Source: Piromyces finnis finn
Lineage: Eukaryota > Fungi > Neocallimastigomycota
Direction: 5' to 3'
Assembly: GCA_002104945.1 (NCBI GenBank)
Contig: MCFH01000034.1
Span: 310,001 to 374,000 of the forward strand
DNA length: 64,000 nt
In this document: positions 9,001-12,000 of the stretch, one piece after another
How positions within the stretch are numbered: position 1 is the first letter of the stretch
Layout: the number at the start of each line of letters is the position of its first letter
Program-made: the position numbers and the translations under genes
The notes under the pieces: model-generated
Databases searched by the model: none
The model's input: the letters and a program-made list of their open reading frames with translations, nothing else
What the model was told of the DNA's origin: nothing

Positions 9001-12000
9001 ATTAATGTCAAAATAATAAATTGTTTAATATATTGTCAATTAAATCAATAGTAATTGTTAATTTCCCACTTTTATATCGAATACATACTTTTGCTCATTT
9101 CTATCTCCTATAGCAGAATACAATATACCAATAGCTTTATATTTTAAATTTTGGTTTTTCCAAATATTGTATGAACAATATAAGAATTTATAAACAGAAC
9201 ATCTAATATTTTGATTTTTGTGAAATATTAATGAGAATTGAAGCTTTATAAGCTATATTATTTATAATAAAAAATATTTTATAAATGTTTAAAATATTTA
9301 ATTGTTAAGATATTTTGAATATTTTGATTTTTCTTATTTTTTTTATAAAAATAGTATGAAATAAAAGAATTGTATATTACATCAATTAAGATATCGTCGG
9401 ATAATCTATCTAAAGGAAATTGAATGAGTGCATCTAATAATGTTAATACCATATCCTATTAATTATTTTTATTTATTTATTTTTTTTTAATAAAAGTTAA
9501 TAGTTTATATATGTAATATTTCAATAATAGAAATAATAAGAATAAAAATTATAAATTACATCTTTATTTTGATAATTTGTAAAAATATCTCTTAAATGAT
9601 TCCATATAAATAATAATTCTTTATCGCTGATATGAATAAATAATGGAATTAATGATAATATAACGTCTAATGCTTTTTTTTGAATTACAGATTCACCATT
9701 TATTAATAATGAAATGAGAGCTTGTATTATATATATATCAATCTTTATATAATTTAGATATAGACATGAAAAATAATATTTTATATATATATATATATAT
9801 ATTATTATTATTATTATTATTATTATTATTATTATATTATTTTTATAATCGCATAACAAATAAAAGAATATAAAAAAATAAACTTTATATAGGTAAATAC
9901 CCTTTTTTCTTTTTGTCCCCAATATTTTATTAGATTTAAAAATTTTAAGCATTCATTCATTGAAACAAATTCTAATACATTAGCATATTTTAATAGTTGA
10001 TTTTTTTGAATATTTGGTGATATAGAAATACCATTTTTTAACAATTGTTCTACATAAGTTTCCTCATTAATTATATTATTTTCATTTTCTTTTATTTCAT
10101 CTCTTGTATCAAAGTCATAACTCAAATTATTAATATCCAAATTTCTATACTCTTCAATTAATTTAATAATTTCCGAATGTTGTTCCACATTATTTTGGAA
10201 TATTTGTCTGTAGAGAGAAGCACAATAATAGTCATTATCAATTAAACCATTAACAATAGTAATCATTAATTCTGGATTTAAACTTAATAGTCTTGGGAAA
10301 ATATTTAATGTTGCATATAAACAAATAGCTGCACCATATCTTATTAAGGGTTGAACGGCAGATAATTGATAATTTAATGATAATATAAAATTTTGTAATG
10401 GGGTAGATTCTTTAATAGTTTTTTTTTTCGGGTTAGTTATTTTAGTGAAACTCTCTATAGCCCAGTCTAATAAATCCAAGAAATCTTCATTATTTGATAC
10501 AATTATATTTTTAAACGCTTCATATACACTATTTACTATTTATTTTTTTTTAATTTAAATGATATGAATTATGAAATATAATAAATTATATTAAAATAAA
10601 TATATGCAATTTTTTTCAGAGGCATATATATTATAATAATAATTATTGTAAAATTAATAGATACATGAAAGATCTAGTTTTGTTTTATTATCTTTAGCTA
10701 ATTCATAAATATCATTAAAAATTTTATTCAAAGTATTTTGAATTTCAATTGTTTCCTTTGGAGACTGTAATTTTTTTTTTTTTTTTTTAAAAAAAAAAAA
10801 GTTGAATATAATAATGAAAGCGAAGAAAATAATTTACTTTATATATATATAATTCTCTACATATTAAATATATACCTTTCTTTCTAACTTCATTAATTCT
10901 TGTATAATATTCAAAGTAAGTTTTAAATTCTTCGTATATAAATTTGAAAGAATATTTAATGCCTGATAATTATATATAAAATAAAGAAAGTGAAAATTTT
11001 TTTGTTATATATATAAATAATATTAATTATATTAATTATATTCTATTTAAATATTATTTTTTTAGTAAAGTAATAAAAAAAGAAAAATACACGAATAGAA
11101 CATATTCTATCAGGATAACTATTTGAAACTTTAATAAATGCTCCAAGAGAAAATTTCAAATTCCAAAAGGAAAGCAGTATATATTAAAATAATATTGATA
11201 TCTATTAAGGATTAATAATACAATATGTTGATTTTTATTTTAACAATACTATATTTTATTTAGTAATAATAATAATAATATAAATATATATATTTAATTT
11301 TATTTAATAATATAAAAAGGATATTATTATCATCTTTAATAAATATTTTTTCATTGGTGTTAATTATTTGAGTTAATGCTGAAATGCATATTCCTCTTAC
11401 TAAAGGATCAATATATGTATAAAAACATTCTAATCCTGAAACTAATGCTAATGATATTTTATTTAAAGATCCTCCAATGACTTCGAATAAATCAGATACG
11501 GCCTTAAAAACTAATATCATTATGAAATATTTTTTAAAAAAAATATTTCATAATGTAATAATAATAGAAGCGATTTTAGAAAAGGGAAAAAAAATATTGA
11601 TCATCTTTATACTAATATTTTATATAAAATATTTATTGAAGCAAGAAGAAATAAAAAATATTTATTTTTTTTTACCATTATCATTTGTTTGTATATTTAG
11701 AATAATAATTTCTAAAGCTTTTTTATTAGAGGATAATATTTCAGCATCAAAAATTGTTGTTAAATGTAAAAGATATTGAGTTGCTTGTACCCTAATATTT
11801 TCAGAATAATGACTTATATTTGCAATTAAATGAACAGCAAATTTTATCATAAGACCTTCAATCATATCATCGAAAACTTGATTTTGTTGATAGTCAAGGT
11901 AAGTGAAATATATAGGTTGAGGTATATTCATTTCAGTATTATCTAATGTTGTAGTTTCATTATCTTCATTTGGTTTTTTATATATAGACATTAAACTATT

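Follow-up and report, generated by a model that had tools for sequence, protein, structure and literature searches.

The locus raises the question of how exons 2 and 3 of a long gene on the minus strand are joined. The gene is located in the window, the 64-kb stretch of DNA analyzed here, which has a G+C content of ~19%. Our analysis indicated, with little room for doubt, that the two exons are separated by a genuine U12-dependent AT-AC intron at 11324..11177 (minus strand), the second intron of a single-copy gene that encodes an ARM/HEAT-repeat protein of ~1950 amino acids in an anaerobic gut fungus (Neocallimastigomycota).

Gene structure and intron motifs

The gene and its elements around the intron are given below. 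L094 is a 2025-nt metagenome contig (Ga0138319_1018864), and the profile was built from 14 full-length homologues of the protein.

3032..12177, minus strand: whole gene, ~30 exons, encoding an uncharacterized ARM/HEAT-repeat protein of ~1950 amino acids, colinear with its chytrid homologues
11676..12177, minus strand: exon 1, start ATG at 12177; profile match and blastn alignment with L094
11511..11675, minus strand: intron 1, ordinary GT-AG; junction agrees with L094
11325..11510, minus strand: exon 2, ending in GLECFYTYIDPLVRGICISALTQIINTNEKIFIKDDN plus base 1 of a Met codon; profile positions 145-206, E 5.6e-22
11177..11324, minus strand: intron 2, U12-type AT-AC, 148 nt, phase 1; motifs, break in the L094 blastn alignment, profile continuity, no canonical alternative
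11314..11324, minus strand: 5' splice site ATATCCTTTTT, the U11/U6atac recognition motif; perfect match to the AT-AC minor 5' consensus (ATATCCTT)
11204..11211, minus strand: branch-point motif TCCTTAAT, candidate branch A at 11205/11206, 28-29 nt from the 3' end; complementary to GUAAGGA of the U12 candidate
11177..11178, minus strand: 3' terminal AC, intron end ...ATATAC; first AC downstream of the branch motif
11091..11176, minus strand: exon 3, bases 2-3 of the Met codon followed by LSFWNLKFSLGAFIKVSNSYPDRICSIR; profile positions 208-235, contains the nearly invariant W-N-L-x-F
10963..11090, minus strand: intron 3, ordinary GT-AG, GT donor at 11090; blastn alignment with L094

The gene spans 9 kb. 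With its long exon (10533-9901) as the query, full-length homologues of 1900-2100 amino acids were found in Spizellomyces, Batrachochytrium, Gonapodya, Cladochytrium and Synchytrium, and in the ichthyosporean Chromosphaera. Each of these is an unnamed ARM/HEAT-repeat protein, and the relatives seen are from zoosporic fungi and one ichthyosporean. P0001 and P0052 are exon relatives with 75% identity. Pfam searches returned no significant match for six exon translations and only generic HEAT repeats for three full-length homologues. A comparison of the homologue profile with PDB sequences gave nothing useful. The protein atlas returned only generic HEAT-repeat look-alikes (MMS19, ECM29), with scores that were also reached by shuffled proteins. 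A second copy was sought in the window's own assembly (56,455,805 bases in 232 contigs) and no paralogue was found, indicating that the gene is single-copy.

Two long AAT/ATT trinucleotide runs are found within the gene span. One is located at 9790-9845, in the intron after the long exon. The other, at 3904-4075, corresponds to poly-Asn and poly-Ile frames on the strand opposite to the gene. The next open frame downstream of the 3' end of the gene (1483-2268, minus strand) is a 261-residue piece with a lysine/glutamate-rich start. It was taken at sight for a tetratricopeptide-repeat protein and is probably a separate gene.

The motifs and the AC end of the intron and its join to the open frame of exon 3 had been given in a preliminary description of this DNA, and all of these sequence statements are correct. 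Exon 2 closes one base into a codon, and the join A|TG restores a Met, which is followed by LSFWNLKFSLGAFIKVSNSYPDRICSIR. Between the branch motif and the conserved Trp codon, no AC other than that at 11178-11177 is present. If the intron is read unspliced, a stop is reached after 21 codons. The intron is 80% A+T and has no pyrimidine tract to speak of. No RNA fold of the intron that brings the branch and the 3' site together was found (z = +1.6).

Taken singly, the motifs are no more frequent in the window than expected. For ATATCCTT, four matches compare with 7.1 expected, and for TCCTTAAY, five compare with 8.6 expected. Two of the four ATATCCTT sites are followed by TCCTTAAY on the same strand 65-113 nt downstream, and both are located within the HEAT-repeat gene. 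Across the genome, the combined pattern of ATATCCTT and TCCTTAAY has 115 matches, compared to 59 in a reversed control. A GT-AG-type U12 donor (GTATCCTT) was also sought in this gene, and none was found.

Position of the splice junction

To define the junction, all in-frame donor/acceptor pairs between exons 2 and 3 were enumerated. The frame of exon 2 runs to a stop at 11262-11260, and that of exon 3 opens only past a stop at 11186-11184. The enumeration found no GT or GC donor between 11387 and the exon 2 frame stop, and no AG acceptor between the exon 3 frame stop and 11142. The only in-frame canonical pair is the GC at 11387 with the AG at 11141, which would remove 32 residues.

This pair is the basis for supposing that the two exons are instead linked at different coordinates by the major spliceosome, through a GT-AG or GC-AG intron. 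It is in frame, and its AG is preceded by the pyrimidine-rich TTTTCTCTTGGAG. However, GCATTT is a poor GC donor, and the exon 2 frame contains no GT after 11400. The splice would also cost 20 residues in exon 2 and 12 in exon 3. NEKIF and the nearly invariant WNLxF are among these residues, which both the homologue profile and the transcript-like L094 contain. We consider a canonical junction here extremely improbable. The preliminary description had named an alternative GT-AG or GC-AG junction as evidence against its assignment; the enumeration gave none that spares the conserved residues.

Two further 3' ends were considered and rejected. Use of the AG at 11141 by the same AT donor (AT-AG) loses WNLxF and places the 3' end 64 nt from the branch motif. 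Use of the AG immediately after the branch motif produces a frame that stops after 22 codons.

The homologues argue for the AT-AC junction. Searches with the spliced model were run on one exon at a time. The open-frame pieces of the window match the homologue profile in order, from position 6 to 1947. At the junction, exon 2 reaches position 206, the split Met codon occupies 207 and exon 3 starts at 208, with no gap. The spacing between the conserved Asp and the nearly invariant Trp-Asn-Leu-x-Phe is the same in the gene and in its homologues.

The exact junction is seen in an orthologue. A first scan of metagenome contigs with the long exon as the query found nothing. A second scan with exon 2 as the query identified L094, which contains a start codon and then the equivalents of exons 1-8 without any of their introns. 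L094 therefore evidently derives from the RNA of a related gut fungus. It is 85% identical to exon 2 at the protein level, and its segment 849-939 is 84.6% identical to exon 3 at the nucleotide level. In the blastn alignment, L094 651-848 is placed on 11526-11325 of the window and L094 849-939 on 11176-11086, so the adjacent bases 848|849 correspond to 11325|11176. L094 reads K D D N M L S F W N L across the join, which is the end of exon 2 followed by the start of exon 3. When the cut is moved by one base in either direction, the join sequence in L094 is no longer reproduced. Excision in mRNA at exactly 11325|11176 is thus shown in this transcript-like orthologue only.

The second scan also returned seven high-GC bacterial contigs (L095-L101), which were discarded as false positives. 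Within the long exon, L094 has an in-frame TAA (1475-1477) at a place that is a sense codon in the window; an error of sequencing, a variant allele or a defective transcript could account for it.

The AT-AC splice had been proposed as the only one that links exon 2 to the open frame of exon 3. L094, the profile, the enumeration and the minor snRNA genes described below all support this proposal, and the first three are lines of evidence independent of one another.

Probable conservation of the intron position in chytrids

Conservation of the position in orthologues had been suggested as a check of the intron. We aligned 37 homologues at the protein level. Most of the 37 gene models read ...EEDQ-LAAI-WNLYF... 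cleanly at the codon that carries the intron. Six models from five species are faulty at exactly this codon (P0009, P0022, P0063, P0064, P0074 and P0075). The Batrachochytrium dendrobatidis JAM81 model reads NDD-H-I-L-F-I-C-F... and has lost the WNL exon, whereas a newer model of the species (P0069) is clean, with NDD-LSAIWNL. The Polyrhizophydium stewartii model reads EEDH-HILFDLA ahead of ...PAIWNL, and the Quaeritorhiza haematococci model reads EEDH-HIL... In Cladochytrium replicatum, an in-frame insert of 26 residues, HIHSNP...PLPL, is located between EEDQ and LAAIWNL. In two models of B. salamandrivorans, ~24 residues are deleted.

Errors of this kind are expected of gene finders that have no model for an AT-AC intron. 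H-I-L-F corresponds to C|AT ATC CTT TTx, which is ATATCCTTT read through in phase 1, and the chytrid peptides fit ATATCC(T/A)T. The equivalent read-through peptide in the window is N-I-L-F. In Cladochytrium, the insert is followed by Leu, whose codon cannot begin with G, and this excludes AG as the end of the unspliced segment.

The breaks at the same codon in five chytrid species bear out the suggested check, as far as protein models can. They suggest that the position, in phase 1 and four residues before the conserved Trp, is probably ancient and common to Chytridiomycota and Neocallimastigomycota. One probably ancient position would thereby be added to the minor introns of these two groups. 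The AT-AC intron is of use mainly as a check on annotation quality, and it corrects the gene model at this locus. It also identifies the public models of Batrachochytrium JAM81, B. salamandrivorans, Cladochytrium, Polyrhizophydium and Quaeritorhiza as wrong at this codon.

Branch site and selection of the 3' end

The branch motif TCCTTAAT at 11211-11204 is perfect, and its branch A is located 28 nt from the 3' end. In animals and plants, U12 branch sites are usually 10-20 nt from the 3' end. The distance here is well beyond this range, so use of the A at 11205/11206 is not certain.

To place this distance in context, 88 of the 115 genome-wide pattern matches were fetched. A candidate was kept if it is flanked on both sides by open frames of 25 codons or more and an AC connects these in phase. 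This yielded 33 AT-AC candidates, which are assigned by open frames and not by RNA. The distance between the branch A and the 3' end is 11-14 nt in 11 of them, 18-29 nt in 10 and 35-48 nt in the rest. As these distances reach 48 nt, a spacing of 28 nt is normal for this genome. In 29 of the 33 candidates, the AC that keeps the frame is also the first one located 8 nt or more past the branch A, and the same rule holds in 18 of the 22 with more than one AC available. This suggests that the 3' site is chosen by the first AC and not by a fixed distance. The long spacing is consistent with such a cut, because AC is scarce in introns that are 80% A+T. The intron is thus one more data point for a tolerance of long distances between branch and 3' site among the minor introns of this genome. 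If true, the long spacing would bear on how the minor spliceosome selects the 3' site.

The same spacing could instead indicate that the AT-AC intron, though real, is a substrate of the major (U2-type) spliceosome, or that the branch is a cryptic TTTTAAT 8-9 nt upstream of the AC and not TCCTTAAT. U2-type AT-AC introns exist, 28 nt is long for a U12 branch site, and TTAAT is found 8-10 nt before the AC in both AT-AC introns of the gene. However, TTAAT is common in sequence that is 80% A+T, and the candidates described above, cut at the first AC 11-48 nt after TCCTTAAY in 29 of 33 cases, make long spacing usual in this genome. The perfect 9-base 5' motif together with the perfect 8-base branch motif is the signature of a U12-type intron. 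TCCTTAAY is expected within 150 nt by chance at ~1% of sites, and it is present in both introns. Removal by the major spliceosome or through the cryptic branch is therefore very unlikely. We infer that the intron depends on the minor spliceosome and that the A at 11205/11206 serves as the branch.

Minor spliceosome snRNA candidates in the genome

Candidates for the four snRNAs specific to minor splicing are present in the genome.

U12 candidate: 66.6 bits, Rfam cut-off 53; includes GUAAGGA, which is complementary to the branch motif
U6atac candidate, L002:1501-1649, plus strand: 52.1 bits, Rfam cut-off 33
U11 candidate: 38.2 bits, Rfam cut-off 39 (near-threshold); conserved stem-loop and Sm site
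U4atac candidate, the only one, L004:1501-1639, plus strand: 49.2 bits, Rfam cut-off 53 (near-threshold); ambiguous with U4, for which the locus scores 39.7 bits, cut-off 46

A stretch of U6atac that has been proposed to base-pair with the 5' splice site reads AAGGA in vertebrates and GCCGA in the candidate. GCCGA-type U6atac is the 'CC variant' of several lineages, and two chytrids, Batrachochytrium and Spizellomyces, have been found to possess minor snRNAs (Dávila López et al., 2008, PMC2396436). The U11 candidate has a SNORD14-like C/D-box snoRNA candidate (L003:2162-2325, minus strand; 52 bits, cut-off 64) at a distance of ~550 nt.

Established knowledge of minor splicing suggests how the intron would be removed. 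U11 snRNA, and later U6atac, would base-pair with the ATATCCTTT 5' site. U12 snRNA would pair with TCCTTAAT, leaving the branch adenosine bulged, and the U4atac/U6atac.U5 tri-snRNP would join next. The 3' cut would be made where AC first occurs downstream of the branch site, in this case 28 nt away. The product would be ...KDDN joined to (M)LSFWNL... in phase 1.

The second AT-AC intron and possible regulation

The preliminary description had called 11324..11177 the second AT-AC intron of the gene. This proved correct, with the following intron as the other.

8753..8853, minus strand: AT-AC intron, 101 nt, phase 2; ATATCCTTT ... TTCCTTAAC ... AC, motifs, branch A 29 nt from the 3' end

The two introns are located in the same gene and on the same strand. 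Both have perfect motifs and an AC end, and their branch spacing is about the same. They differ in phase and length, phase 2 and 101 nt in the intron at 8853..8753 compared to phase 1 and 148 nt in that at 11324..11177. The position of the former is not marked by annotation artefacts in chytrid gene models, and its conservation is without the same kind of support.

The occurrence of two AT-AC introns in one gene had been considered notable. This did not hold up. By chance, 0.5-1 same-strand pairs within 10 kb are expected, and one was seen; the estimate rests on the 115 pattern matches, ~56 above the reversed control. One pair in a 9-kb gene of ~30 exons is therefore not remarkable in itself.

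It had also been inferred that slow minor splicing could be a rate-limiting or stage-specific switch for the gene; the intron would then often be retained. Minor introns are spliced slowly in animals. Here one transcript carries two of them, and retention would halt translation 21 codons into the intron. On the other hand, two minor introns in one long gene are within chance expectation. In Rhizophagus, the one fungus studied in this respect, minor-intron retention differs only modestly between cell types, and the authors prefer neutral explanations (PMC10639083), which lends little weight to regulated minor splicing. Regulation through retention has, in our view, only a slim chance of being correct. 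A specific form of it would have both AT-AC introns, with branches 28-29 nt from the cut, spliced slowly and acting as a joint retention switch that limits the HEAT-repeat protein to certain life stages, such as zoospore formation. This form is similarly doubtful. If true, such a switch would exploit a minor spliceosome in gut fungi that takes the first AC after the branch almost regardless of distance.

Comparison with known systems

The intron at 11324..11177 shares with the U12-type AT-AC class (Hall and Padgett, 1994; Tarn and Steitz, 1996), as that class is cited in PMC10639083, the ATATCCTTT 5' site, TCCTTAAY, the terminal AC and a non-zero phase. As in this class, the host genome contains candidates for U11, U12, U4atac and U6atac. 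The intron differs from the class in having its branch 28 nt from the 3' end compared to the usual 10-20 nt, in its 80% A+T content and in having no real pyrimidine tract.

Minor introns and their snRNAs have been published for Neocallimastigomycetes, among them Piromyces finnis as well as Neocallimastix californiae (Larue and Roy, 2023, PMC10639083). The fungal group, the intron class and the machinery in that study are the same as here, and the species is probably identical. Its text has no per-intron list and describes neither the intron at 11324..11177 nor the chytrid conservation and spacing of this intron; the supplementary files contain no species table. Seen against these systems, the intron at 11324..11177 is a well-proven, ordinary example of a class already published for gut fungi.
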